A stretch of 63,972 nucleotides of DNA, filler included, from Klebsormidium nitens (taxonomy: Eukaryota; Plantae; Klebsormidiophyceae), in assembly GCA_000708835.1 (NCBI GenBank). It is 9 parts of 9 records of this genome, joined end to end, with 100 filler letters (N's around TTAATTAATTAA, not from the genome) between each part and the next. Parts side by side here need not be neighbours in the genome. Positions count along the whole stretch, not along the records: positions 51,466 to 59,815 come from DF238126.1; 8 more parts are not named here. One strand, 5' to 3'. The notes beneath the pieces were generated by a model. The model was given only the letters and a program-made list of their open reading frames with translations. It made no database searches and had not been told where the DNA came from. Shown piece after piece: positions 7,844 to 62,379 of the stretch (position 1 is the stretch's first letter; each line of letters starts with the position of its first letter). The translations under genes and the position numbers were made by a program.

Positions 7844-9704
7844 AGGTCGGAGCTGAGCAGTAGCCAGAGCAGGTTATAGAGGCATGCAATGGAAAAGCAG
7901 TAAGGAGGTATCCGCACAGTCAAACAAAGGTCAGAAGAGTCCGGTCAATCGACAATTCTAGTAGGTAGGTGTAGAATATCATATGCATGCTTAGATGAAC
8001 TTGGAGGGATCAGCAGCAGGACGTGCAGAATTCCCCGTTATTCTTGAAAAAATGTCGACTAGCTCTGGTAATTGGGGAGGATCAACATTTTATTGTTAGT
8101 GATCATGCGGCCTGTTCCGGTGGCAACATAACTTCATGATCTAGCTTTGGATGCGATTGCCCTCATTCGTTCCTCAAGTAGAAACATGTGTGCTGCACTA
8201 TGCATGGAAGGCCATGCAGGCGCGCATTGTGACTCGGATCAATCATGAAGTGGGAGAACGTATCACTCGTGAAACTCAATGATTCATGCACTGGTTGTCA
8301 GCTAGTGATATGGAACCAAACCCTCGCCGAGCTTGCTGTCTGCCCGGCGCCCCTTTTACAGAAATGTCCAGCAGCATCTCCTAGGTTGCCTCGTAGCTTA
8401 CTCACTGCAGCGCAGCATGGAGTGAAACGGCATACGCACCTGCAGCTTAATTGCTCAGTCTATGAGACCTGCCGGCAAATTGCAAATCAGGGCGGCGGCC
8501 ACCTTCGCATGGATGTATGGCACGTTGCGCAGCACAACCATGCGACCATGATTGACTCAGGGTAGTGAGTTCGACTGCCATGCCATCTTTAGCCTGTGCA
8601 ACTTACAGCCAATGTCTGCGACATTTGCGTCTGTCCATGCCTGACCAGCAGATTCGGTCCTATAGCGCATGACCTTAAAGGCTCCCATGGTTCCAGTTGG
8701 TCGACGCGTGCTGCCGCATATTAGTGTGATATAAGTCCATGCATATCAGTCTGAAGCTAGCTGGCTTGCGGGCCTCATCATTGGAATCGTTGGCATACGC
8801 GACTTCAAATCATGGCTGCTAGCATCCATGAAGCATTAAACAAAATGCATCAGCTTTCTATCAAGGGTTTGCTCATGCCAAGCACAGCTGTACAGAAGTA
8901 CTGTACAGAAGTACTAAATGCGAGAGAAGAGTGAATGCAGCTCGGAGGGCTTCATCAAGCGCTTTCTCACCAAAGTGCAACCATCACTCAAAACCAGACC
9001 AAAGTGACTCAAAAAAGGGCTGTTTCTGATGGATCGCATGAGGGCGGCCAAATCTTCTCTAAAGGCTCAGTTTCGTCTTCGTACTGCTGCAGTAAGAATG
9101 TAATGTCTCCACTATCTCCAGATAGCGCAAAAATATCCCCGGCGCAAAGCTCAAGCCAGGCAAGTGCGAATCAGCACGTCACACGGACAGCGGGTGGCGG
9201 TTTGAGGAGCATGGCAATGCAATAGACTTTTCGCAAAGAAGATATGACAAAGTGAACAAGACAAAATGAACGGAGATTAGATAAGCCATGCAAACCTATG
9301 GATGCAGGATGGAACGTAAGCGAGAACAGGCAGAGTACTTTATTGCGTTTATTCCATGGACCAGGACTGTTCAATGTCAGATGTGTCAGTAAAACCCCAG
9401 AGTTACAACCGCATTTGCGGCACTTGCTGGATTCAAAACCCTGCCTGTCAAAACTGCCAGCTCTCTTTTGCTAATGGCCTCCCTACTCAAGGCTGTGGTA
9501 CCGACGTCCGCACATCAAGAAGCCAACCTCCCTTTTCCACGCCCCTTGCATGCTGATGCCCCACATTGCGCACCCCAACAGCTCTCATTGCTGCATTCTG
9601 GCCTCCTCCATCCCTCCGTCCCTTACCTAGATCTGCTCAGCCCTTTTACCCCTCCCCTTCTCCAACACAGATCTGCTCTGACTCAACACCGTACCTAACC
9701 AGAT

Positions 9705-10160
9705 CTACGAGCTTGGCTTCAGGAGACCGCTGACTACTGAAGAAGCAACCAGCAGCGCGACCACGTCAGCAACAACGACCGCCCCCGCCTTCGTCAACTT
9801 GTCCTCTGGCGTTGACACCTTTACGCTGGGAGCCGAGAAAGAGGGAGCAGAGAAAGAGTCGAAGAAGTTTCCGGACGCCTCCTTTGCATTTTCTACCGCA
9901 TTGTCTACAGCCTTAGTAGCCTTCTTTTTGAGCCCGAAGAGGGGGATGTCCTTTGCCTGGGCGGGTTCAACAACGGGCCCTGCTGCAAGGAAAGCGACAG
10001 CCGCGGCGGCGGCAATGCTGACTGCTACCTTCCTGCGCTCCTCAGAGCTGCAGGTAACTTTGCAGGCGGTGGCGCGCCTGTGAGAGGCTGAGGGAGCGCT
10101 GGCGAGAGGTGCCGCAAGGAAGGTAGAGGCAGAGGAAGCGAGAACCACCGCGGACGCCAT
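9705..10160 (-). CDS. Chloroplast/thylakoid-targeted small protein resembling the plant YCF37-like protein (At2g23670 type)
   Basis: Ser/Ala-rich transit peptide, RR plus hydrophobic stretch and AQA cleavage motif, then KDIPLFGLKKK and a C-terminal hydrophobic segment (AGAVVVADVVALLVASSVVSGLL). Family assignment is from memory of the plant sequence. Confidence 0.7.
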   Translation of the reverse strand: MASAVVLASSASTFLAAPLASAPSASHRRATACKVTCSSEERRKVAVSIAAAAAVAFLAAGPVVEPAQAKDIPLFGLKKKATKAVDNAVENAKEASGNFFDSFSAPSFSAPSVKVSTPEDKLTKAGAVVVADVVALLVASSVVSGLLKPSS

Positions 10161-10383
10161 TGTTGCAGGTCTGTAAAGACGCGACTAATACTACTAGGTA
10201 ATAGGTACAATGTGGCGCCTTCAGCTTGAAGTTGAGCTGCGCTTCTCAGCATTGCAATGCTGTCCCTGGGCTTTGAAGTTTGAATATCGTGAAACCTGTA
10301 GATTTTGAGTGATATTCGGCGACGTTTTGGCCTGCGTCCGTGCTAAACTTCCGCCGAACTCCATTAACGCCTATAAACCTATG

Positions 10384-10454
10384 AAACCCTACCTATCACC
10401 AATTATGCAAACAATCGGTGAAGCACAGCATTCCAAAACCCTAGTACCTAGGTA
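10384..10454 (+). promoter_or_regulatory. Two telo-box motifs (AAACCCTA at 10384-10391 and 10436-10443) plus a TACCTAGGTA palindrome in the divergent YCF37-like/RPL10 promoter
   Basis: Exact motifs seen between the head-to-head ATGs at 10160 (-) and 10762 (+). Telo-boxes are established elements of plant ribosomal-protein promoters. Confidence 0.55.
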
Positions 10455-10761
10455 TGTAAAGGTGTACGAAAAGTTCGACACATCGACTTTCGAAGGATCG
10501 AACCGCTTCCAGCTGGCGCCGCGGGGCCTCTTCGTCGCTGCTTCCGTCACCCCTCCAGAAACCGCTCCCGAGTCTGTGCTGGACGTTTCTGGAAGGGCCC
10601 CGTGGCCGCAAAACTCTCTGCTCAAAGTTTCGGCGTGTATTTGAGTGAGCAAATTGAGAAGGGGGATCATTTCTCAGCCGCGCGTTGCGGCTTCTTCCTC
10701 TTTCTTGTGCACAGCTTGGATAGGAAGGGCGCCAGCCAGGAACGCAAGGGAGTGGAGCAAG

Positions 10762-14623
<3,862 letters not shown>

Positions 14624-17600
14624 GGGCAAACTGCTCTTTTAGCTGATCGCCTGGACTTCGTAGACACAAACGATGTTCGGAAGTTGTGGATTGAGTTTGG
14701 TCCACGCCTGTAAAGGTTTTGCCAAGGAGTGTGTTCAGCTGGTTTACCTGGATACATATGCGTCATGTCGAAAGTTCCTTGTATGTCACACGAGCAGTTC
14801 CTGACGGGGTTGCCATGTAATGCACTGGACATGAATCTTCTAGATATTTGTGTGTCATGGTGCGCCGGCTCTGTTCCGACCAGTTGTGATGCTAGTGTTG
14901 GATTGGTCCGCCCACATAATACATATCTGGAATAGCCGTCTGTATTCGCGTCGAAATTGTGCAAAGGCCGGCCAAGAAGCTCGGTTAGGTAAGAGCATGT
15001 ATTGAATGAGGTCCTTTTCTAAGCATCACTCATCATTGAGTGCATCCATGTCATGGTCGATTGGCACGAGAATTCCCATTATATGGAGCTATATTGCATG
15101 CCAGCCTGTAATGGCAAATTTACGAAGTTGCCTAGAGCGATGTTATCAGATCAAATGCGCGCGAGATATTTTGTGATTTGTTGAATATTAGAGTGAATTT
15201 TCGAAATTTCTCCTTCGAGCTAGCTAGCCTAGTAGCGCAGTAATTCCGAATGTGTGAATCTTAACAACCCAGTGGTGCATGCATGAACCCCGAGCCGCCC
15301 ACGTAATCTGCAGCGCATGGCGTCAGCCTGGCGAGACGTTGAAGCCGATGCTCCTGTTGATCAAAATCATGCAACCGGTTAGGGTATCTTGTGGCGCAAC
15401 TTTCCTGCGGCTGCCGCCATTAACCGCGCATGTCACCATTGAGGCCCGGGCCGGTCGGACCGATGCACACTAACAAAAAAGGTGGCCTTGATACGTACTT
15501 GTAGCACGGTCCAGAAATAATATTCAGTGCGGCCCATTGCTTTTCTATACTGACACGTCAATATGGGTATTGAGGGTTTAATAGCGTCCAAGGAGGTCTT
15601 GCACATGGCATCGTGTCAGAACAATTCTGCAGGGGCGTCTGGAACCGTCTCCGAAAATAAAACCGGCCACCAGCCCCCCCCTCTCCTAGCTAGAATGCTT
15701 GATTTCCCTAGGGGTAAATGTTGCCCCTATATGTTGCCCCCACTGGCCTCCAGCACCCCCCCCACGAGGGCCAATTTGATTTGGAGTTCGATTCGGACGC
15801 CCTTGCACATATGTGTTGGGCATGTGTTATGACACCATGCCCATCAAGCGCACTCTTGCCGCCTCTCATCTTTTGAAGCTCGAGTCGGAAGTAGGTAAAT
15901 CTCTCTCAAAGCTCTTGAATGATGAAAAAAGTCTTCTATCAGGACGCGGCCTCGTCTCAAACATTTTGTCATCTCCGCTTGCACTGGCTCATCGCGATCC
16001 AAGCTAGAGAAGCTCTGAAGTCGTCTGTCGTGGTAATTTGCGATTTTGAAGGCCGCCCTGGAACAAACGCGGCTACGAGTGAAGTCCTTGAGAGAATGGT
16101 CTTTTGTAATTTTGCTCGACCGGTTTATTCGCGTCTATAAGATGGTTACCGCCCTGTTTAAAGAATACTCCAGACACCCTCGTGTAATTCAAGTCTATAA
16201 TAGGACTTGCCAACGCAGTTTCGCATTCCGTTTGTTCAGATTTCCTGTGTAGTGTGACAGTTGCCGAGTCCTTTCAAGCCTTCGTCTGCTGCCTAGATCA
16301 TCCACAAGCTAGACCGCTTACAGAGAGGTTTTTTTCCCCCCCCTTAACCATGGATGGTATGGGATGGTTATGGTTGGTCAGAGAATGGTTGTGTGTCCAG
16401 TAACCAGACTTGGGCTCTAACCAGCTCCAGAACAAGGTTAAAGTCCAGTTTTGTCCCCTGACTGAGACTGAGTCTGGTAATCAGGCTGGTTTAAGCCAAA
16501 ACGTGCTATGAAATCAACCTACAAGCGTACCTTTTATATCTTTCTTACAGATCGGGTCAGGGAGGAGGACCGGCTAGCGTACCACTCCTATTTGGCAAAA
16601 CAAGCTGCGGCTGACAATGTTCCACAATCGTGGAGAGACCGGTGGCTGCAAATGGCCGCGAAGATTGGTGAGTAGAATCTTTGCCGGCCTGTAGATATAG
16701 GCTTCGGATTCAATGGTCATGCATTTGTTCACACAATTGCTTTTAGAACGTATGCTTCGATAGGGATCAAGCGATTAAATTGCTTCACGCTCAATGTCAT
16801 TAAACCAACGCGGCCAGGATGCACCAGTCGAGATTGGCCGGTTTTCTGAGCATGTAATCTTGAAACCAGCGCCGAGAAACGGAACGCTCGTTTGACGCTC
16901 GTAGCTGGGATATGTTGTGCTGGTCATCTCGCAAGCCCAGTGCACGTAGGTTCAAGCCGGTTCTACTCGTCCCTCCTCACACGCTTGATTATGAGGTCGA
17001 TCGCGAGGTAGTTCAGAGTTTGCCAAAGGGAAAAGCCCCTTCTCCAATTCGGGCAGAATCTGACTGAACAGAATCAAGTCGAGGTGCCATGAGGAGACTT
17101 CCATGCGGTCCCAATCACGGCACAAACAATGGCACTGCGTCTTAGAACCGATTCCGATTTTGGCGCAGATGCACACCTGGCGGGCTTGAAAGCAGATACG
17201 GAGGCCGAGAACGTGACGCCACCTCCGAACTGTACTGCAGCAAACCAAGTCTTCCAAGGCTCGCCACCGGGACACGTCAAGACCTCCGTCAGCCCTGCGA
17301 GACTGTAGAAAGTCCCGGAGAATTGTACCATTAAGGCTTGATTCATGATCGGCGAATCGACGAGGTTGAACAGTTTAGGATACTCATGCAAGCTGAGGTT
17401 TACAGGCATGATGAAGCAGGCAAAGAGGCACCGAGAACTCGATGATCGCGTGCATACTTTGAGAATGTTTTTCGTTGAATATTGTGAAGCTCCTCTGCAT
17501 GGTGCGAGCCTTACACATGCCGTCTCTCTGCATACACATGATTTTCGTATGTGAAAGCTCGTTCAAGACACACTGTGCGAGTTGGCCTCGGACATTATGT

Positions 17601-51465: not shown

Positions 51466-52620
51466 GGGCCCCTTCCCCCGGATCATCCCTAATGCCGTGA
51501 GCAACGAGAGCTAGGCTGCTACCCGCTTCCAGGATGGGAGCAGAAACGGCCCCTCCCGCAATACGAACCGTTCGAAGACGACCTCGGTAGGTCTCGCGAG
51601 TGCGACGAGGAGCACCGGTGTCGGAGCGGGCTCACCGTCGGGGAATTCGATGCCAAGGTCGCTCTGGAAAGCGGGATTAAGAAGAACAAGCGCCTGCAAT
51701 GGCACACGAAGGGCGGCTTCGTCTTCTGCTGTGGGCACCGCGTGATATACGGGTTTCACGTCATGCTCCGGGGGGAGTCGCCGCGAGACCCCTTCACCGT
51801 CCTCTACACCCGACTCAATCGGAAAAATCTTCCCCTGATCCTCGTCCACGACAACGCCTGCAAGCTGCGCGCCTACGCGATGCGGAGAGAGCCGGCGTTC
51901 TTTGCGGACGTTCGGTTCCTGGTCGATAGGTAAGATCCGAAGATTTGCGCAAACCAAGGGGCGGCTCTTGTTGAAAGCAACTCTGGTGATACTCCGTGCT
52001 GTTGCCATACAGCATTGCGCCTTTCTTCAGCTGTGCCTCGTTGTACCTTTTAGATTCTCATCTCGTGCTTGATCCTCGCAGATTCCACTTCCACCACACA
52101 ACCGCCGAGGCACACAAGTGTGGTTCATCATACAACACAGGTGAGAGACTGATGCATTTGCAAGGCACATGTGCTCTGACTCGTCTCATCCAGAGTGTGT
52201 ATGCAAAGAACGGCGGGTTTAGAATGAATCAGTCAAAAATGCCCTCTCTCTTCTATAGAATAGGGAGGCAAGTTCTGACTGCCTTTCAGAAGTGCATGTC
52301 TATGCAGCATTATTCCTCTACAAACGCCATGTCTCAAGGCTTTCCTATGATGAACTAATTAAATCCCCGTATTACGTGCAGACTACTACGACTCTGTGCG
52401 ATGGGTGAATACGTCGGCAGTGGAGTCGTGCAACGCATTCCTCGTCACCTTCAAGACGCAGGCGTGGTATAGCAGTCTCGTAGCGTTCATGATCATTCTC
52501 GCTAATCTAGTCAGCGGAAGGAATAGCGATCTAGCACGGGTTGACGAACCAAAGCTGCGCATTGCGGGCAGAGCGGACACATGGAGTCCGGCTGTACGGC
52601 AACGACTCTTGATGTACTGA
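51466..52620 (+). mobile_element. KDZ (Kyakuja-Dileera-Zisupton)-type transposase C-terminal region with introns (exons ..51929, 52082-52140, 52382-52620)
   Basis: Spliced frame: GGFVFCCGH...GESPRDPF...HDNACKL..Y...REP.FF...FLVDR|FHF....HKC...YN..|..NTSAVESCN. An in-frame TAA at 51490-51492 suggests decay or an exon boundary. Confidence 0.75.
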
Positions 52621-52808
52621 TGACCCTATTGAAACAAAGACATTCATCGAGAAGTCACTACGACTCGTACTTTTCATCAGATGCTGCATACATTCCACCA
52701 GCATCGATGTGCATAATGGATGGTCGTTATCATCAGCTGAAGATATGCCACTTCGGTGCAAACGAAAAAGATACTTGTGCTAGTGGCATGCCGTGCTAAG
52801 ATGGGGGC

Positions 52809-53200
52809 GCAGACCAGAAGCCCAGAAGACCCGGATTCTAGATCTTTTCTATTACAGCACTCATGGTCCTTGGAAAATTCTGAAATCAAAAATACTTGAA
52901 ATCGTGGTCTTATAGACTTTTGGTCTGCAGACCAGGTGCCCAGAAGACCCGGATTCCAGATCTTTTCTATTACAGCACTCATGGTCCCTGGAGAAATCGA
53001 AAATACTTGAAATCGTGGTCTTATAGACTTTTGGTCTGCAGACCAGAAGCCCAGAAGACCCGGATTCCAGATTTTTTATATTACAGCACTCATGGTCCCT
53101 GGAGAATTTTGAAATCGAAAATACTTGAAATCGTGGTCTTATAGACTTTTGGTCTGCAGACCTTTAGACCAGAACTCAGACCTGGAAGATAAATCTTACC
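52809..53200. repeat. Tandem array, ~111-118-bp unit, ~3.3 copies, with palindromic TGGTCTGCAGACCA junctions
   Basis: GCAGACC starts at 52809, 52927, 53038 and 53156. 14-bp perfect palindromes at 52921-52934 and 53032-53045; 12-bp palindrome at 53151-53162. Confidence 0.92.
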
Positions 53201-53271
53201 AACCACCAGCTTGCAAGCTCTATAGCTCTCCTCTGCGTGCAAACGCTTGCTCTGACCGTCGTCACCTACTC

Positions 53272-56112
53272 TTACGCATGAGATTCGAAGCCAGATTTCA
53301 GTCGAACCCCCGAAAGGCCTTTAAACTGTCCTCGAGATTGTACCTGGCTGTCTGTAAATCGACCGTCTGCAACCACCCGATTCTTGCCTTCAGCATACTC
53401 CAAGATGCGCTTTTTCAGCGCCTTTGCCGACAAAGAGCTAGTCAAGTCTTCTTCTTTCAACCAAGCTCGGAACGCCTCTCCAAGCCGTTCGCCGACAGCT
53501 AGGTGCCATGTCGGTCTGGCCCCCGGTCTGATGTCTTCGAAATCGAGACAGTCTTCGATCCATCGTCTAGCAATGTCCGAATCATTTATGTAGGCTTTAA
53601 CAGATTCCTCCATGACGCGAGGACGGCGCATCAATGGTAGACTGTCTGGATTTGCACGCTTCAGCTCGTGATACCGTTTGGCCCCCTCTGCGTACCAGGA
53701 AAGACCCTCTTCTCGCCCTTGGTCGCTTTGCAGATACGTTTCAAGCGTAGTATCAATGAGCTTTTGGCGGGGTTTGCTCGGATCGAGTTTCTCAGGTGGG
53801 AGAAAAGTGACCAACATCGGGAGGAGTGCCAAACGCCTGGTTACACAGTAGGATACGTTATGAAGAATAGGCCGATAGTTCGTGTTGAGAACAGTTTTCA
53901 CGGTGATCTGGAACGTTTCTTGTTTGGTGTGCAGTTCGCGCCCAGTAGTCGTGCCAGACCCCGAGAGCGCTTTCATTGCGGCCTCGTTCAAGACGGCCTT
54001 CTCACCTGACTCGTCGGTCTCCGCTAGCCTTCCGCTGCGAAGCGCCATAATATGACTCGATGCAGATCCGGCCGCCGGTTTGCCGGCCTCGATAATGCAG
54101 TCCTGAGACATAACGACAGCATAGCTACCTAGAACCTCAGAATTCGCTAGTTTTGTCAATGATTTACCATTAGCCCCAGCACCTTGCTTGATTAAGAACA
54201 ACTGTTCGCTAGTATCTGTACTCATACAGTAGCCGCAGAAAAGTTGATACCATTCGAGCACTTCTCTGTCTTCGTTGAAGCAATCGAGCAGAAACTTTTC
54301 GAATCGGCTTCCAGCTTGTGGCATTCCACGAAAAGCTGCCTTTGACGCACGCGAACATAGATGAGAAGGATGAAATGCGAGCAAGGTTCCCGTCTGGGTG
54401 TTGATTATTCCGTTCGCGCATGCAAACAGATACGGATTGGCAATATCCATCAAGTCACTGAGAGATTGGGGGGCTTGTAGTGCATTCGTAACAAATTCGA
54501 GGCAAACACGGACCTCAGATCCCCGCGTTAGGTCTACAAGGTCACGCTTCTCGAGATATGGGTAGTTCTGATTGACTACTTCCCATACGGCGGTGCATAT
54601 TTTTCGCTCTTCCTCAGTTCTTGGGTTCAATGCCCAATCCGGAAGAGCCGATTCCGGGGTTAGGGATGCGTTTTGCCATGTTGCAGCGTCTCTCATATGT
54701 GCAAGGAGTTTTTGCTTGAAAGCATTGAGTCTCTGCTTCGCATACCAGGACATGATACGGGACATGTGGCAACTAAATACACTTTGTATATGGAACGCAT
54801 CGTCAATGATCCATCGGCAACCGTTCCAGTATTGAAATGTTTTACCCTCAGCAATAATGCGTCCGTCAACGAGATACACAGCCGAGAAAATGGCTGCCAT
54901 TCCCCGATAGCGCTGCGTCACATTACGCCGGATAAGATTCATGTGTGCTTCCACAGCATCCTGCGACATCGTTCTTATGTTATTCGAAAAGGTACTCCAG
55001 TCATGAGTTGGGTGCAGACGTACGGGATTGGCATCCAACAACGACACTGGAAGAGGGATATTGCCGAGCAACGCAAGAGGCTTTTCTGAGCATTCGATGC
55101 CAAAGCATCGATAGAAAACCGTCCAACCTCGCTTTACGAGCGTCAGATTATTGCTACCATCGTGTTGATGGCCATGTATGCACGTTCGTGGACCATCACA
55201 TATGAATGAGTAGAGCATACCGTATGGACCACGGAAGGTCACGTTGCCAGAGAATCGAACGTTCGTATCGAGTCCGTTGTTTCGCAACAAAGCCATCATT
55301 GCATCGGCAATTCTTTCGTGCTCGATTGATCTTGTCTCGTGTAAAATCTCGGTGTCCTTTTCCGTTTGTATGTTTTCTTCAGTGTTTGGCGCTTCGAGCC
55401 CGCTTGCGTGCTCGATATCAGCACCGTTTGCTGAAATCTCTTGGATTCGATCGCTCGAAGTCGACACAAGGCCCTTCTTTGCGGATCTTCCAGCAGAATT
55501 GTTGAGGAATCGGATCAACCATGATGGAGCTGGTCGGATGTTTGTCCTTGAGGGATGTGCGCACCAAGTGTGATTCAACTTAATCTCGGGTGAGCCTGGC
55601 GGGGCCAGAACGATGCCTCCGTCTCCGCGCCCATCGAGACCATAATACTGGCCCTCGTAGTCCACCCCAGCAAAACACTTTCCCGATTGCAGTCCGTCTT
55701 TGAGTGATTCACCATATGAGAAGTAGTAATGAAGGCCTCCGCTGGCAGAAGTGGCTTTTAAGGTGTCTGGTTCTCCATGTTCCGGAATCAATCTATTCCA
55801 AAGAGGCATGCCAGCTCGGAGATCTTGTTCCGGTTTGTCTCGTGTGTCTATATCGAGCACGAAGATGTCTGAAATGGTTCCTGTCTTTATCGCCAGAAAG
55901 TTGAATCGTTCTTTTTCAATCTTCTTCATGATTCGATCCCTTGCCATCCTCCAATCGGACACTGTTCGTATAGCGTGATTGCCTTTCGTATGTGGCATCG
56001 TTGCCAGAATATCTTTCGATCCTTCATCCGTTGCTCTAACTTTTGCCGGAATAGCATACAGTCCTTCTTGTGCATACGCTTCCAACACGCTCGCGATCGA
56101 GTTTGTTGCCAT
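53272..56112 (-). CDS. Prim-Pol + Cys/His domain + D5-like SF3 helicase (primase-helicase), intronless, 946 aa
   Basis: LAIKTG, VLDID, SASGGLHYYF, LDGRGDGG (Prim-Pol); ACANGIINTQTG (D5_N); Walker A GAGANGKS; AETDE; NEAAMKALSG...GRELH; LNTNYRP; RRL. Confidence 0.92.
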   Translation of the reverse strand: MATNSIASVLEAYAQEGLYAIPAKVRATDEGSKDILATMPHTKGNHAIRTVSDWRMARDRIMKKIEKERFNFLAIKTGTISDIFVLDIDTRDKPEQDLRAGMPLWNRLIPEHGEPDTLKATSASGGLHYYFSYGESLKDGLQSGKCFAGVDYEGQYYGLDGRGDGGIVLAPPGSPEIKLNHTWCAHPSRTNIRPAPSWLIRFLNNSAGRSAKKGLVSTSSDRIQEISANGADIEHASGLEAPNTEENIQTEKDTEILHETRSIEHERIADAMMALLRNNGLDTNVRFSGNVTFRGPYGMLYSFICDGPRTCIHGHQHDGSNNLTLVKRGWTVFYRCFGIECSEKPLALLGNIPLPVSLLDANPVRLHPTHDWSTFSNNIRTMSQDAVEAHMNLIRRNVTQRYRGMAAIFSAVYLVDGRIIAEGKTFQYWNGCRWIIDDAFHIQSVFSCHMSRIMSWYAKQRLNAFKQKLLAHMRDAATWQNASLTPESALPDWALNPRTEEERKICTAVWEVVNQNYPYLEKRDLVDLTRGSEVRVCLEFVTNALQAPQSLSDLMDIANPYLFACANGIINTQTGTLLAFHPSHLCSRASKAAFRGMPQAGSRFEKFLLDCFNEDREVLEWYQLFCGYCMSTDTSEQLFLIKQGAGANGKSLTKLANSEVLGSYAVVMSQDCIIEAGKPAAGSASSHIMALRSGRLAETDESGEKAVLNEAAMKALSGSGTTTGRELHTKQETFQITVKTVLNTNYRPILHNVSYCVTRRLALLPMLVTFLPPEKLDPSKPRQKLIDTTLETYLQSDQGREEGLSWYAEGAKRYHELKRANPDSLPLMRRPRVMEESVKAYINDSDIARRWIEDCLDFEDIRPGARPTWHLAVGERLGEAFRAWLKEEDLTSSLSAKALKKRILEYAEGKNRVVADGRFTDSQVQSRGQFKGLSGVRLKSGFESHA

Positions 56113-56226
56113 GGTTTTCCACAGACCAAAGGAGGTCTGGAGCCCCCTGTAGTTTCAACCCCAGAAAATTTTGTTTAACATAGAACGCGGGATTCGACGA
56201 AGCCCACACGTGCAAAGACGTGTTGG

Positions 56227-56472
56227 TTAGTACGATCGAATCCAGGGAATAGCGATCTGTACCTGATAAAGTCGCTGCCTCGTCCGTCTGCTTGTCTTGC
56301 TTCCTTTCGCAATTCGTTCAAGAGCCTTCTTTAAGAGAATCTCGTCCTTGTGTACTTGATAGTAACTCTTCGAATATTCTCTTTTCTTGGCTTGATGCTC
56401 GTCTTTATAGATGCTCGCCTCCAAACAAGCAGCACACGCATTCGATCCATGATTGTGATTCGTGGATTCCAT
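56227..56472 (-). CDS. Small basic protein (~81 aa) with H-x-H...CxxC and REYSKSYYQVHKDEI motif
   Basis: Open frame; ATG in strong context (ACTATGG) at 56472 (alternative ATG at 56511). Lys/Arg-rich, virus-like small DNA-binding protein pattern. Confidence 0.6.
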   Translation of the reverse strand: MESTNHNHGSNACAACLEASIYKDEHQAKKREYSKSYYQVHKDEILLKKALERIAKGSKTSRRTRQRLYQVQIAIPWIRSY

Positions 56473-56568
56473 AGTTGGAGTGCAATTGATGCCTCCTAAT
56501 AATTCTAACATAGAAAAATTGCTCCTCAGAGAACGCACACAAAGTGCAGAAAGAAGAAAATTGCCCAC

Positions 56569-57612
56569 TCATTCGAATCGTCTATTGTAGAGTTCATCCG
56601 CAGTCCTCATGCTATGGCCCATGTATTGTGCCTTTGCTCTCACTTCACCACGGGACATCAGCTTCGGACTCTGTTCAGTATGTGAGATGTGTCGAAGCAG
56701 AGTGCAGCTAAGATTTCGACCGAAATGGCGTTGACCAAGGTCGTTGAGAACCACGGTGAAATTCGATATCGGTTCATCTTTCCAGACGAGGTAATGCCTC
56801 TTAAGGATCAAATGTTTTCTAGGAATCAGATTGAAGGATCTCAGTATAACCTTTACGAGATCCTCGGGAATCTCAAGGCGCCGAACTCCATCCTTTTCGA
56901 GGGTCTTGTGTCGACCGATGTGAAAGAAACACTGCTTGGGATCTTTGTTCAACTCGACGACGTTGATATCACCCGGTTCGATCGCAACACGATCATTCCC
57001 GTGATCCCTCATGAAAAAGATGCATTCAGCATATTCATTTCGCAAAGGTCCCAGCGGCATCGTGTACAATGAGAGAATCAGATGATCCATCACCAACTGC
57101 TTATCATGGCGATCCAAGCGTTCCTTGTTATGGAATCTCGGCACGACATAGCGGTTGATCTGATCGTCGAGTTCCGATCGCCTTTGCAAGAGCTCGGCCC
57201 AAGGAACCCAGTTGTCGACTTCCTTTGGCGTCTTCCTCTGCATAGAATGATCGAGCTCCTCCTCGGTTGGCTTCACCCTCTGCATGTACTTCGAGTAAGC
57301 CGATTGCGTCTCTCCAGCAGCAAGAATAGCAAAAGGGGCTGCATAATTACTCTTCGTCAATGATTTAAGAAGCTTGCCATCACGCGACGTTGGACTCTCG
57401 ATGGTCGAAATCACCTGCTCGTAATCCTCGATCCAGCCGAGACTATTCATCACGTCCGGCCCAAAGTCTCCAGCCGCATATACGGTCTTAAGTTGCCTGA
57501 TGTAGACAGACACCGTCGAATCTGATCTGGTCGGCGGAGCTCCGCGGAGAACCTTTTCAGGAGATTGAATCTTCAGCTTCCTGCGAATCTCTGCTTCGAA
57601 GTTAGAATCCAT
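56569..57612 (-). CDS. Tyrosine recombinase/integrase of the Polinton-like virus/virophage type, 347 aa
   Basis: Catalytic set in order: R (LSLYT...PLRNEY), K (RHKT), R (TLLRHI), H (MGHS), C-terminal Y (ELY). Confidence 0.85.
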   Translation of the reverse strand: MDSNFEAEIRRKLKIQSPEKVLRGAPPTRSDSTVSVYIRQLKTVYAAGDFGPDVMNSLGWIEDYEQVISTIESPTSRDGKLLKSLTKSNYAAPFAILAAGETQSAYSKYMQRVKPTEEELDHSMQRKTPKEVDNWVPWAELLQRRSELDDQINRYVVPRFHNKERLDRHDKQLVMDHLILSLYTMPLGPLRNEYAECIFFMRDHGNDRVAIEPGDINVVELNKDPKQCFFHIGRHKTLEKDGVRRLEIPEDLVKVILRSFNLIPRKHLILKRHYLVWKDEPISNFTVVLNDLGQRHFGRNLSCTLLRHISHTEQSPKLMSRGEVRAKAQYMGHSMRTADELYNRRFE

Positions 57613-57674
57613 TGCCGTGAAAGCGCATCGTCGTTACTAATCTTTATAGATATTTTTTGTAAGATACAGACGTC

Positions 57675-58490
57675 TCACATTCGATCTGGATTGAAGCGCT
57701 TTCCATTGTACTGAATCTTACTCAAGAACATTGACCAGTTGCTAGCGGTCATAGCCGTCTGCGGGTTGGTGACAGAAGTCAAGAAGTAATCTCGAGGTAT
57801 CAATAGAAGGGTTCGATGGAGATACTTGCTCAGCATCTTGGTTAGAGGAATCCGATCTCCGTCTTCGAAGACGAGTTTGTAATCTCCCTTGCGTCGTGAG
57901 GTCTGCAGCAAATAACTCGCACCTTCGAGCTGTTGGCCCTTCCGCAGGATTGGAAGCTCGTGCAATTTTACACGACGACGATGCTCCTTACTCAGAAGCA
58001 TATGCCATTGGAGGACGAGATGCCACATGCAGATCTTTACCTCCTTAGGAGTGAGATCTCGATCCATGTCTTCGAGACTCAGCTGTCTGACCTTGCGTGC
58101 GAGCTTCTTTCCAAAAGTTTCGACCTCTTCAACGGTCATCTCTGATGCGGCGTCCGAGGCCTTCGTCTCAATCTTTCGTTGAGCGGTCTCCTTCAGAGCC
58201 TTATTTTCCTTCCGGAACGGCTCATAGTAAGTCTGATAAGCCTCCGCATAGCCCAGTTTGCGACAAATAGCAAGAAAAGGGGCTATGCGAGTACGCCTGG
58301 ATCCAGGGTTATCATAGCGCTCTAGAACAGCTGCAACAATCTTCTGAGCCTTACTCTTTATCCACGAGGGATCCTCGGGCATTTTATCCTCAAAGACCAT
58401 GTTCCATAGGAGCTGAATCCCCTTGAGATACTGCTCTGTGGAACTCTCGGTCCTAATCCCATCAGCTAAGACCTTCCGTAGAGCATCCAT
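57675..58490 (-). CDS. Tyrosine-recombinase paralog lacking catalytic residues (~271 aa)
   Basis: Collinear similarity to the adjacent YR (RTESSTEQY/RSDSTVSVY, SWI/GWI, APF/APF, AYQTY/AYSKY, HLVL/HLIL, IPRDY/IPRKH). It stops before the RH, GH and Y motifs. Confidence 0.72.
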   Translation of the reverse strand: MDALRKVLADGIRTESSTEQYLKGIQLLWNMVFEDKMPEDPSWIKSKAQKIVAAVLERYDNPGSRRTRIAPFLAICRKLGYAEAYQTYYEPFRKENKALKETAQRKIETKASDAASEMTVEEVETFGKKLARKVRQLSLEDMDRDLTPKEVKICMWHLVLQWHMLLSKEHRRRVKLHELPILRKGQQLEGASYLLQTSRRKGDYKLVFEDGDRIPLTKMLSKYLHRTLLLIPRDYFLTSVTNPQTAMTASNWSMFLSKIQYNGKRFNPDRM

Positions 58491-58859
58491 AGTTATCACC
58501 CGTCTACGATGACGCAAGAAAATAATTTTATAACGTCTCCCATTTCGCAACAAGTTATTTAAAAAAGGTCGGTCACAATAAAATGACATCGAAACCTCTC
58601 CTAAACGCTTATTTTCTTGAAACTGCGTGCGGGGGCCTGAAAAATGTTTATAAATCCCGGGATTTTTAAAGAGAATAACTAGTTATTTAAAATGCACTTG
58701 TCACTTTTTCACGGTCTCTCCGCATGCGGTTCACACCATATGCACTATATATTATCGCTTGCAACGGGGTTTGTTGACTCCGCATAGTCGAATATGCATT
58801 AGGGGGCAGCATTATTTTCTACGATCTATCATCATAGACAGTGCACCAGGCCATCCGAT

Positions 58860-59360
58860 ATGGAATCTGCGAAACGAAGCTTTCGGGTGATTGCTGCCTA
58901 CGACGCGAAGGGGAATGATGTTCTTGCTCTGCTGAAGAATACGCGACTTGAGATCGACGCGAAGAAGGGGCGCGTCTGTCAAGCGGGGGCCCGAGCTGGT
59001 TCTCAACTATTTCGGACACAGAAATGTCAAGGGAAAAAGGTTTCTCTTCCACAGAATGTAGTTGTCCTCATACAAGAGACTACAAGAGGTTCAACGAACA
59101 AGAAGTACGGGTACTCGGTCGAGATCGGTCCGGTGAAGAAAAGTAATCGCCCGACAGGTTTGCCATTCGAGGGCACCTTTCAGAGTATAGCTACAAAGAT
59201 GGAAGTCGAAGACATCGAAAGTATGAGTTCTTCGAAGAAGGTTTCGAAGTCGATTAAAGCCACTCATAAGCCCAAGCCGATTATTGCTAGAAAGAAGTCT
59301 GCTCCGGCAAAGAAAGCGGCAGAATCGGTTGATTCTAATTCCGATTCAGACTCGGAATGA
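58860..59360 (+). CDS. MC1-like DNA-architecture protein with Lys/Ala-rich tail and acidic end, 166 aa
   Basis: QAGARAGSQLF...VLIQETTRGSTNKKYGY resembles the giant-virus MC1-like signature (AA.KA...ETT.GS.KK.Y.Y). Tail includes RKKSAPAKKAA. Confidence 0.65.
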   Translation: MESAKRSFRVIAAYDAKGNDVLALLKNTRLEIDAKKGRVCQAGARAGSQLFRTQKCQGKKVSLPQNVVVLIQETTRGSTNKKYGYSVEIGPVKKSNRPTGLPFEGTFQSIATKMEVEDIESMSSSKKVSKSIKATHKPKPIIARKKSAPAKKAAESVDSNSDSDSE

Positions 59361-59423
59361 TTGCGTTGAGGAAATCCGGTCACGAGTCTACCGGTCGATA
59401 GTGCCATGTAACGATCACAACGT

Positions 59424-59807
59424 TTGGCACATCTGGCCTGGGGGGACGACATCCTCGTTTTTGAGCGCTACCATGAATCCCGCGTCATCGCGGAGTTGCT
59501 CCTGGAGTCACTACCTCAAGCGGCGTTCCAGACGGGTCTCTACATCGTCGGCAGCTCGAGGGCGACCCGCATCTACATTGACGAGCGCATATTCGTGCAG
59601 TCTATCGTAGTCTCGCTGCTTAGTCTGTCAATGCAATACTGCACTCTGCTCTGGGAGGCGGTGTACGAGGGCAAGAGGTTGTCGAGGGTGTTTCTGGACC
59701 GGTTCCATAGCGCAGGGCAGCCGATTCTCGTGATAGCAAAGTCTACGCCGAATGTGGATAAGGAGGAAATGGGAGAGGTCAGTCTGAAGTCGGATATGAC
59801 GATTTAG
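59424..59807 (+). CDS. Membrane-protein fragment with ESLPQ..FQ motif (XK-related-like), host-like composition
   Basis: 127-aa ORF with hydrophobic helices and ELLLESLPQAAFQT. Confidence 0.4.
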   Translation: MAHLAWGDDILVFERYHESRVIAELLLESLPQAAFQTGLYIVGSSRATRIYIDERIFVQSIVVSLLSLSMQYCTLLWEAVYEGKRLSRVFLDRFHSAGQPILVIAKSTPNVDKEEMGEVSLKSDMTI

Positions 59808-62379
59808 GTCTGAAGNNNNNNNNNNNNNNNNNNNNNNNNNNNNNNNNNNNNNNNNNNNNTTAATTAATTAANNNNNNNNNNNNNNNNNNNNNNNNNNNNN
59901 NNNNNNNNNNNNNNNCATTACGACTTCCATGTGCATCCGTCACGCCAAATCTGTACCACCAAGCCTTATTCAACTTTGTCTACCACAACCTGAACATTGA
60001 CACTCCGGCACCTGATAAGGCCACTACTTCGCCGTAGTTTATGTTATCTGCTACGACTACGGGCCACTCTCATGTACGCCGCGGTGGATGGCTCATCACC
60101 ATTGCGGGCGCCCACGTGCGACACTATGTGGATTGGGCTGGCCCTAAATCAGTTTCATACACAGGGCGTTGTGAGGAATTCAAAGCGAAATACCGATCAG
60201 ACATATAGGGCAAATCTAGTTTGACCCTTAACAGTGGCCAGGCAATGAAGAATTATGTTATCTGGGCAATGCAGTGGAGTGTCAAATAGCACGACTGCAT
60301 GCATGTTGTCGTTCATGAGTTTACACAATGGCATGTGCGTCTCTTGGTGCATAATCTATGCAATTTTACGACTTCTCAACCAAGAAAGTTCTCTATTTGA
60401 AGTGACTGCGAAGATGTCGGAAGGGACACCGCGAGAAATCCTCCACGACCCAGGTGGTAGGTTTCTACAAGTATGTAGTTGAGAAACTTCTCGTGATGTG
60501 ACCCGTTCGATTCAGTCAACCCCAACACTGGCACTCATCACGGGCCAGAACAAGTTGCCAGCAAATAGACCACGTAGATTACCTGGCGAAGTCGGTCTGG
60601 GAAACATAGAGTCGGGCTTTTCTCAACGGATAGAGGCCAATCAAACAGCATACTGGAAGATGCTTCCAGAGATGCGTGCCTTCGTCGACACCTTTCCCAA
60701 CGAAACTGCGCAATTCTTTATGCCAAATGTGAAGAAAAGCGTAATCGCCCCTAAGAGCCCTTCCTACTAGCTATGTGGAAGCCTTGCGGAAAGCCTCCTT
60801 CTATAAACCTGGTCAGTGTGGATATGAACGAGTATATGCTCATGCTATGGGAAGAATTCGATCCGCCCAAGCAAAGCCATTCAGGAGCGAGTCGTGAATC
60901 ACACAATTGGACACAACGAGGTTTATGCTTATGTTCTGCAGCTTGCAGGAAAATCTCCAGAGTTTTACGTTCAATGCTCCTAGTCACACCCACCCCCAGA
61001 TCTAGCTCATAAGCTCTTTCCACAACCTCAGTGACATGGGCCCAGATCATTTCGGCTTCGAAACTAGACGCTGACTTCCCTTCCCAGAGCCCCTTGCCCG
61101 CTCCCTTCATCAATGTGGGCACTAAAGGGGTGGCTCCCGCCATTGCAGCGCCCCCAAGATGCCGATTCTTACAGTGCTGGTGCCGGTGTCAAGCTAGCAA
61201 GGGCCACCAAAGAGCACAACCTCCAATGCATAACCCTGACATTGTGTACTGGCATTGTCTTAATGTGCTGCTAGCTTTTGAGAAATGCGTCACTTTCAGC
61301 TGTTGAAAAATGCAGAGCTCATTGGGTTTCTGGGATGAGGTGCTGTTTTCCTAGGCGCCTCTTGCCTTCTCAGCTGCACCTTTCAAAACCCCTGAAGTTG
61401 GCTTTTGTCTTCCCTTCGCAGTCTATCGAGACTTTAAGGGTTCATATCCTTTTAGATCCGGAATTCGGGTTCATTTTACGCGGAAATGTACAGCTTGCGG
61501 AGTCGCGGAATTTGAATAATTAGCACCCAATTTCGAAGTCTGCTCCTTGAAGAGGCAGCTCGGCAATAGCCTGCGAGAAGAGGTACGCTCCGGTCAACCA
61601 TTTTAGTCCCATGCAGATACCCTCAGCTGAGCATTGCAGAAGCGACGACGTCTCTAAAGAGCTATCAAGCTCTCAACAACGTTTACAATGCCCCATGACC
61701 CGGAAGCAACCACAATTGTGCACAAACAGAGGACCGGAGCACTGGCCATCAACTTTTGGAATGAGGTCAGGAGCTCACCACGGTCTCAAGCGCATGATGA
61801 CTCTCATGAGGAACCAGGAAAGGAGACTTCAGCGCCAAACCAGCTGCGCCTGCAATTACATGAGAAGAAACATCACTGAATACCTGATTACACTATGACA
61901 CTAGAACCGTAACTGTCATAAAATCTCATAAAATGAGGGCTTCGCCCGATGACATGTACAAACATCATTTGATGTTTTAAACATCATTGTCGATATTTAT
62001 AAAACTCTCTCGTGGGCAGATTTCAAAACGAAGTATGTTTTTGGAAAGCTCTCAACGAGCTCGTATTGAAATCAAGAATGAATATGTTAGAATATGCAGT
62101 GATAACGAGATAAACATTATTTCATCTCAAGAACATTGCTCGGGTTTAAGAGGGCCCTAGTGTAGTGCCCCGTGAACGCCACTTATTGGTCAGCACCACC
62201 GGTAACGATTTGCAGTTAGTCCGCGAGTGGGCGCGCGAGTGATACTTAGCGCGGCCACCACGAGTGAGTCCGACTTNNNNNNNNNNNNNNNNNNNNNNNN
62301 NNNNNNNNNNNNNNNNNNNNTTAATTAATTAANNNNNNNNNNNNNNNNNNNNNNNNNNNNNNNNNNNNNNNNNNNNAAG

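Follow-up and report, generated by a model that had tools for sequence, protein, structure and literature searches.

Adjacent paralogous tyrosine recombinases (YRs) that are used together on one site are known from XerC/XerD at dif, from TnpA/TnpB of Tn554 and from the RIT elements, which carry three YRs in a fixed order. In all of these systems every partner is fully catalytic and cuts one strand pair. In Tn3-family modules (TnpR/res, TnpI/IRS, TnpS with TnpT), the transposon has a transposase and, apart from it, a site-specific recombinase, the site of which lies in a divergent promoter by the recombinase gene, and non-cutting accessory contacts control the reaction. Among kinases, proteases and some transposases, it is well known that an inactive paralogue can steer an active enzyme; to our knowledge, such steering is hardly documented for tyrosine recombinases. 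Here, we describe a tandem of two YR-related genes, A and B, carried by a mobile element in the streptophyte alga Klebsormidium nitens. The window, that is the whole stretch of DNA analysed, measures 63,972 nucleotides, filler included, and joins parts of nine records; the piece that holds the tandem, positions 51466-59815, comes from DF238126.1. Labels beginning with L denote other loci carrying related copies.

Several described systems come close to this locus. MrpR/YopR of SPbeta is a protein of YR fold that has lost catalysis and become a DNA-binding regulator (PMC10516654). Polinton-like viruses (PLVs) often combine a YR with a primase of the archaeo-eukaryotic type (AEP) plus a superfamily-3 helicase (S3H) (PMC12220804). 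The accessible text on the Plavaka 'giant repeats' of Amoebidium describes a transposase of the Kyakuja-Dileera-Zisupton (KDZ) superfamily together with intron-poor cargo genes that include YRs (PMC11244446), and K. nitens itself is known to hold giant-virus inserts (PMC5294986). In the K. nitens element, a predicted catalytically complete recombinase (A) follows directly upon a shortened YR (B) that lost its catalytic parts long ago and has been retained under purifying selection. The pair lies downstream of a conserved palindrome and within an element that also encodes a putative KDZ-family transposase and a primase-helicase.

The two recombinase genes

By its motifs and its predicted two-domain fold, with a helical core-binding domain and a catalytic domain, A is a member of the YR superfamily with a complete catalytic set, comprising R191 (in LRNE), K236 (HKT), R307 (LLRH), H334 (MGHS) and Y343. 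The same motifs and the final Tyr are kept in the relatives of A, and among 50 distant members of the family the equivalent residues R149, K186, R257 and Y289 are invariant and H281 is nearly invariant. The first His, that of the HxxR box, is absent from A, which has Thr in its place (CTLLRH), and from the wider family, which has Ser (SSMLRH). Some active YRs also do without the HxxR His, and its absence alone does not exclude activity. The AlphaFold (AF2) model of A, built on 16 relatives, reached a predicted local distance difference test (pLDDT) score of 67, and almost all of its top 40 PDB structure matches in Foldseek were YRs, among them XerA (E 5e-4), Cre/Tre (template modelling score 0.43-0.49), Tn1549 Int, XerH and lambda Int. 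Protelomerase TelA matched more weakly, and the YopR and SroF structures were also listed. Among viral structures (BFVD), the best matches, which reached E 5e-8, were YR-like proteins encoded by giant viruses of algae and by a virophage, namely Aureococcus anophagefferens virus, Heterosigma akashiwo virus, Tetraselmis virus and Qinghai Lake virophage. A is apparently able to cut DNA and would be the working recombinase of the element.

B is clearly a member of the same large YR family on profile alignment. A direct BLASTP comparison with A is weak (23% identity over 124 N-terminal amino acids, E 0.005), whereas hhalign matches B to the A-clade profile at 94.6% and E 7e-8, and to the 50 distant members at 98.4% and E 9.7e-15 over 244 columns. 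From residue 1 to 266, and across both domains, B is collinear with the family. It retains the N-terminal domain, the linker helix, in which KLARKVR is invariant, and the catalytic domain's front half, where the 'EHRRR' of B aligns with the Arg-I box; this box is present in the close copies and lost in L011. In the 50-member alignment 8 residues are missing from B at the position of the family's YKT/HKT hairpin, which bears the Lys. If the A-clade alignment is used instead, the Lys-equivalent position is variable (K or E) among the B copies. The protein stops short of the family's MLRH box by a few residues, so that Arg II, His and Tyr are all absent, and from the loss of these parts we infer that B no longer cuts DNA. 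The open reading frame (ORF) of B spans 57675-58589, but its conserved start is the ATG at 58490, since the 33-codon upstream extension holds stops in L001 and L003; the gene calls of relatives begin at the same Met. The closest database match of B is the K. nitens protein KFL_013000010 (99%).

An earlier note, made from the window alone, had described these genes as two co-oriented ORFs about 60 bp apart, highly diverged and yet collinear, the downstream one with R-K-R-H-Y and the upstream one with the N-terminal domain and the first Arg (EHRRR) but without the HKT loop, RH, GH and Tyr. That description holds in each of its parts: both genes lie on the minus strand at the coordinates it gave, with 62 nt between them, the profile matches reveal homology between the two, the alignment confirms which parts of B remain, and the catalytic set of A is full and its structural model leads to YR folds such as XerA, Cre and Tn1549 Int.

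Public family resources do not cover these proteins. Pfam, including Phage_integrase (PF00589), gave no match for A, and neither Pfam nor PHROGs assigned A or B to a recombinase family. Ten scanned family members had no Pfam recombinase match either, two of them giving sub-threshold Phage_int_SAM only, and PDB sequence searches with A, with B, with the A-clade profile and with a wide-family profile returned nothing meaningful. In profile searches the family comprises 2,958 cluster representatives at E<=0.001. Distant members were seen on small virus-like contigs (L005, 5923-6864; L006, 2290-3231), beside an FtsK/A32-like ATPase and a fibre protein, and a scan of viral contigs with the A profile found only two distant single-YR loci.

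Conservation, ancestry and the upstream palindrome

The order of B followed directly by A recurs in the window, L001, L002/L003, L004, L007, L008 and L010, and in degraded form in L011, the A of which shares only 36% identity. In L009 the order is unchanged, but about 1 kb separates the two genes. Scans of metagenome contigs and viral contigs found no further B-bearing loci. In the compact copies the spacer measures 62-79 nt (62, 63, 66, 71, 75 and 79), its length modulo 3 varies and it holds stops. The spacer motif gtctgtatcttacaaaaaatat is conserved in the window, L001, L007, L010 and partly in L008; conservation does not extend to the TATAAAG after it in the window. The stop of B stands at the same aligned position in all copies examined, with TGA, TAA or TAG as codon. 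Because this position is shared even by the clade with A of 36% identity, the truncation of B is ancient.

Pairwise Nei-Gojobori ratios of nonsynonymous to synonymous substitution (dN/dS) are 0.09-0.23 for B, at dS up to about 1.5, 0.05-0.18 for A and 0.15 for the primase-helicase. Within B they are 0.05-0.15 for the N-terminal domain, 0.13-0.41 for the linker and 0.07-0.32 for the remnant of the catalytic domain, values that indicate purifying selection on the shortened gene. The earlier note had taken the clean frame of B as a sign of selection rather than decay, and these values, including those of the catalytic remnant, agree. It had also suggested a search for the same tandem elsewhere, which the copies in L001-L004 and L007-L010 and the degraded copy in L011 now answer, and had named a full-length upstream gene in other copies as the mark of a recent truncation; the aligned stop in every copy is the opposite of that. 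In L010 (DF237348.1), B is an intact single ORF of 271 codons at 10001-10813. The public model KFL_003990120 (247 amino acids) spans 4.3 kb there (10001-14327) with predicted introns, and seemingly stitches B to unrelated downstream sequence.

Plain tandem duplication of A does not account for B. A tree of the A clade, the B clade and 31 distant members places B with the full-length YR P0055, at a support of 96 in the Shimodaira-Hasegawa-like approximate likelihood-ratio test (SH-aLRT), and the clade of A is sister to the group of B and P0055. The stem branch of B is long (1.67), which calls for caution about its placement. BLASTP points the same way, with 28% identity and E 3e-26 between B and P0055 as against E 0.005 between B and A; duplication in place was rejected on these grounds. 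P0055, on L014, has the whole catalytic set, and its relative on L015 is frameshifted and otherwise full length. Each is the sole YR in the corresponding slot of a sister element, where it stands together with an o166-like gene on the opposite strand, an s113-like gene, a primase-helicase and a KDZ-like gene (o166 and s113 are the small genes of Table 1). L015 comes from the same Joint Genome Institute (JGI) sample as several of the B-A copies. The tree and the slot suggest that B descends from the element's original YR of P0055 type and that A represents a second YR lineage placed downstream. In the simplest history, one ancestral YR was joined by A just downstream, and the original gene then lost its catalytic parts and was retained.

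The region between o166 and B is unusually conserved, with 84% column identity. It contains a palindrome of 22-28 bp, the centre of which lies 168 nt upstream of the ATG of B in the window, L001, L007, L010, L008 and L003, and 167 nt upstream in L004. Four palindrome sequences occur according to lineage, namely GAGAAATCTC-GAGATTTCTC, TAAAAATCCC-GGGATTTATA (window, 58647-58670), TAAAAATGTC-GACATTTTTA and GAGAAAAGTG-CACTTTTCTC; the substitutions between lineages are paired, so that the symmetry is preserved. At the seven loci, the observed arm length was reached by only 0-10 of 2000 shuffles. L015 and L011 have palindromes of their own, 260 and 282 nt upstream of the YR start, and a half-site similar to the second palindrome of the window, AATAACTAGTTATT, recurs at 58549-58564. 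The palindrome may be a site bound by the YR proteins, either a resolution site or an operator; it could also be a hairpin-forming site. As the crossover of chromosomal integration it is ruled out, since it is intact inside copies flanked by host genes.

Proposed role of the pair and its alternatives

The reading that we prefer, and to which we give an even chance, is that A is the catalytic partner and B a non-cutting, DNA-binding relic that, as a subunit of accessory or regulatory kind, serves A at a site belonging to the element itself, in resolution or processing rather than in integration. The pair would then be the site-specific recombination module of a composite mobile element in Klebsormidium nuclear genomes, with B as the remnant of the element's original recombinase. 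B would still bind the ancestral recognition site, most likely the palindrome fixed upstream of its own start, and would act with or on A, either by helping to assemble or orient the synapse or by limiting recombination and transcription. The reaction would be the resolution or processing of replicated or transposed copies, for which Tn3 res/resolvase and dif/Xer may serve as models. Such a reaction is likelier than integration because the element appears to have its own transposase and because the palindrome is intact inside integrated copies.

A more specific proposal, which we consider doubtful, is that A and B form a recombinase split into two components within a eukaryotic transposon: B would recognise a perfectly symmetric site and A would supply the chemistry, so that replicated copies of the element with its putative KDZ transposase and its primase-helicase are resolved or processed at the palindrome. 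It has two forms, one a Tn3/dif-like resolution of cointegrates or multimers, the other a protelomerase-like opening into the hairpin ends of an extrachromosomal linear form. If true, a transposon resolution system would for the first time have an analogue in eukaryotes, and a dead YR paralogue would for the first time be seen to act as a targeting subunit.

Several observations weigh against the accessory-subunit reading. The AlphaFold model of B is poor (pLDDT 52), and the top match of its fold search, Cre at E 0.36, is not significant. The palindrome is tied to the pair by its position alone; it could equally be a replication origin, served by the primase-helicase or by the UL9-like helicase that some copies encode, or else part of a bidirectional promoter, and full symmetry that includes the centre is untypical of YR crossover sites. 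No terminal repeats that would mark the ends of the element were found, nor any repeat common to both flanks of the L001/L013 copy. Many of the copies show decay, with frameshifts in the B of L002/L003 and of L004 and a broken A in L004, L007 and L009; in L010 A is cut off after 59 codons. Present activity of the pair is therefore in question. DNA binding by B, any contact with A and the reaction catalysed are what we infer.

The same decay, with frameshifts or stops in B, A and the primase of L002-L004, L007 and L009, is what speaks for B as a pseudogene, a recently shortened recombinase copy on its way to loss and without function. This is very improbable: a recent truncation is contradicted by a stop that keeps its position through three different codons and into the clade of the most divergent A, and by low dN/dS at considerable dS; the C-terminal remnant of B is also constrained, and the 62-nt spacer holds no trace of the lost C-terminal coding sequence. 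Hardly credible, in our estimate, is that B and A are joined in one product by splicing, read-through or frameshifting. In the window, B ends in ATG followed by TGAGAC, which holds a donor-like site (GTGAGA), and an in-frame AG stands just before the LLRH box of A. The donor-like site is absent from the other copies, which have CTT TAA, TTC TGA, ATA TAA or GTG TAG at this point, and splicing from B to an acceptor before LLRH was rejected for that reason; read-through and frameshift fusion are countered by the variable spacer length modulo 3 and by the stops within the spacer.

The alternative that deserves most attention is that B is a stand-alone repressor of MrpR/YopR type, with an operator in its own divergent promoter, which would control o166, B and A, take no part in recombination and make no contact with A. 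We regard it as possible but rather unlikely. At a fixed distance from the start of B, the divergent promoter between o166 and B does hold symmetric palindromes, B has lost all of its catalytic parts and is still under selection, and MrpR offers a precedent (PMC10516654). In SPbeta, moreover, the integrase is a different enzyme, and here too the putative KDZ transposase and A are available for DNA reactions. Yet the sister element L015, with its single full-length YR, also has an upstream palindrome, which implies that the site predates the catalytic loss of B and may be a recombination site. The adjacency of B and A, with a short spacer in the compact copies across deep divergence, likewise suggests a shared function. 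The evidence at hand does not separate the repressor from the accessory subunit.

Whichever of these roles B would have, the locus offers an evolutionary series, from sister elements with one full-length YR to a shortened descendant beside a second complete YR, and with it a co-located symmetric DNA site that changes in sequence while its position and symmetry are kept. What becomes of a recombinase that stops cutting can thereby be tested with two small proteins and a 24-bp site. The locus further points, in an alga of the streptophytes, close to land plants, to a largely undescribed composite element that unites a YR module with a putative KDZ transposase and a primase-helicase of archaeo-eukaryotic type, and it exposes a YR family of about 3,000 cluster representatives that Pfam does not cover. 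In the literature searched, including that on eukaryotic mobile DNA, no description of a live/dead YR pair or of this gene combination was found.

The host element and its place among known systems

The features of the K. nitens piece are collected in Table 1. Counted from B, the order is B, A, s113 and primase-helicase, all on the minus strand, with o166 on the opposite strand; every gene that lies wholly inside the piece is intact. A 165-amino-acid minus-strand ORF across 51466-51933 is a shadow ORF. This left edge of the piece is GC-rich (0.61, as against about 0.48 elsewhere).

TABLE 1. Features of the K. nitens piece (DF238126.1), in window positions.
Feature	Position	Strand	Description
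Putative KDZ-family transposase	51466-51933	plus	C-terminal 155 codons, cut by the edge of the piece; tblastn 92% to the 413-amino-acid gene of L013
118-bp tandem repeat	52809-53162	none	3.1 copies, just downstream of the primase-helicase gene
Primase-helicase	53272-56112	minus	946 amino acids; Prim-Pol, D5_N and superfamily-3 helicase; Pfam PF09250 and PF08706; PHROG DNA primase families
s113	56227-56568	minus	Small conserved ORF of 113 amino acids between A and the primase-helicase; dN/dS about 0.24
Gene A	56569-57612	minus	ORF of 347 amino acids; YR, predicted to be catalytically complete
B-A spacer	57613-57674	minus	62 nt
Gene B	57675-58490	minus	271 amino acids; shortened YR paralogue, predicted to be catalytically dead
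Main palindrome	58647-58670	none	TTTAAAAATCCC-GGGATTTATAAA; 24 bp, one arm mismatch
Second palindrome	58674-58687	none	AATAACTAGTTATT; beside the main palindrome
o166	58860-59360	plus	Protein of 166 amino acids, divergent from B; basic/acidic tail

The earlier note had proposed a heteromeric recombinase, or a YR-derived repressor or directionality subunit, in a eukaryotic element, and the genomic setting bears out the eukaryotic part: copies sit between host genes. L010 lies on K. nitens scaffold DF237348.1 and adjoins host genes of SufBD and FrhB type, and the L001/L013 copy lies between a TIR-NB-ARC-LRR gene and a G-patch/SURP gene, which limits the element to about 14-16 kb. In L001 (1-2421) the element copy is about 2.3 kb from the TIR-NB-ARC-LRR gene, which is of the plant-type immune receptor kind; from this neighbour it follows that the JGI 'metagenome' contigs concerned (samples 3300060284 and 3300060285) are largely nuclear DNA of streptophyte algae. 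On the o166 side, homology between copies fades past about window position 59,430 without a sharp edge. No tRNA gene was found in any locus and there was no Rfam match, so that integration into a tRNA gene was discarded. When the ORFs that lie between the host genes were searched by sequence against Pfam and the PDB, no capsid or packaging ATPase was recognised, a search that remote capsid homologues could escape.

Downstream of the primase-helicase, all copies encode a 413-amino-acid protein and a Cys-rich protein of 529 amino acids. The former gives no Pfam match itself, and its paralogues in K. nitens number dozens. A homologue with 71% identity, P0236, passes PF18758 with 33.3 bits against a cut-off of 26.6, six other homologues match the same PF18758 region below threshold, and P0211 carries a CxC4 cluster. 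By this homology the element would encode a KDZ-family transposase, and with such an enzyme present the YR pair need not be the integrase. The KDZ family counts at least 12 annotated genes in K. nitens. The 529-amino-acid ORF, with CxC...CxH motifs, adjoins the KDZ gene (L013, 13785-15026 and 10753-12342), and the two may be parts of one spliced gene.

Other parts of the element vary among copies. Upstream of o166, some copies carry a UL9-like (Herpes_ori_bp) superfamily-2 helicase and a DUF8368 gene (L002/L003, 4544-5305; L004, 3758-4288 and 6480-7070; L010, 6763-8585; L014, 2132-2713); the window, L001, L007 and L008 diverge at this point instead. Either the element has longer and shorter forms, or it has inserted beside another element. 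In L008 (3174-5672) a different Prim-Pol/DUF5906 gene, 26% identical and on the opposite strand, takes the place of the primase-helicase. The copy retains o166, B, A and the KDZ gene; its replication module has been swapped. The o166 protein has a Lys-rich and then Ser/Asp-rich tail and no family match was found for it. Its gene is always divergent from the YR slot, also in the single-YR sister elements (L014, 7105-7452; L015, 7133-7513; 39-43% identity), and it could be a further partner of the recombinase module.

The units of the 118-bp tandem repeat each hold the palindrome TGGTCTGCAGACCA, and the exact 14-bp palindrome of these repeats is conserved only in the window and L007. At the same spot L007 has an array of 116 bp x 2.1 (8403-8642) and L003 one of 139 bp x 1.9 (14614-14879) of unrelated sequence; L001 has just one copy of the repeat downstream of the primase-helicase, and L004 has none. 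The array keeps its position and varies in sequence, and the repeats could be iterons or an origin.

Among the systems named at the outset, the viral ones are related to the element through its recombinases. A and B fall into the same broad, Pfam-unannotated YR family as the 'YREC' of PLVs, virophages and algal giant viruses; these carry a single YR, whereas the K. nitens element has the pair, a putative KDZ transposase and, between the host genes, no recognised capsid or packaging gene. The Amoebidium Plavaka repeats, as far as the accessible text describes them, share with it the association of a KDZ transposase, in K. nitens a putative one, with YR genes in a eukaryotic genome, but form tandem clusters of up to 50 kb in a distant eukaryote, and that text does not describe a dead/live YR pair or a primase-helicase for them (PMC11244446). 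Like MrpR/YopR of SPbeta and SroF of phi3T, B is a protein of YR ancestry that would be without recombinase activity and that a mobile element has kept, its DNA binding being predicted. MrpR keeps the whole fold and has lost only the catalytic residues; B, by contrast, is without the Lys hairpin and the whole of the C-terminal segment. In addition, MrpR is bacterial and is not paired with an active YR paralogue.

With XerC/XerD, Tn554 and the RIT elements the locus shares YR paralogues that are kept adjacent. It differs from them in that B, without the nucleophile and most of the active site, would not be able to cut, so that the two partners are not both catalytic as they are in XerC/XerD. 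From the RIT elements it differs further in having two YR-related genes, the neighbours o166 and s113 being unrelated to YRs, rather than three YRs in a fixed order. The Tn3-family modules come from bacteria; their TnpR belongs to the serine recombinases, and their TnpT does not derive from a YR. By analogy of gene layout, the K. nitens element resembles them in combining a putative KDZ transposase and a YR pair with a palindrome that lies in the divergent promoter of o166 and B.

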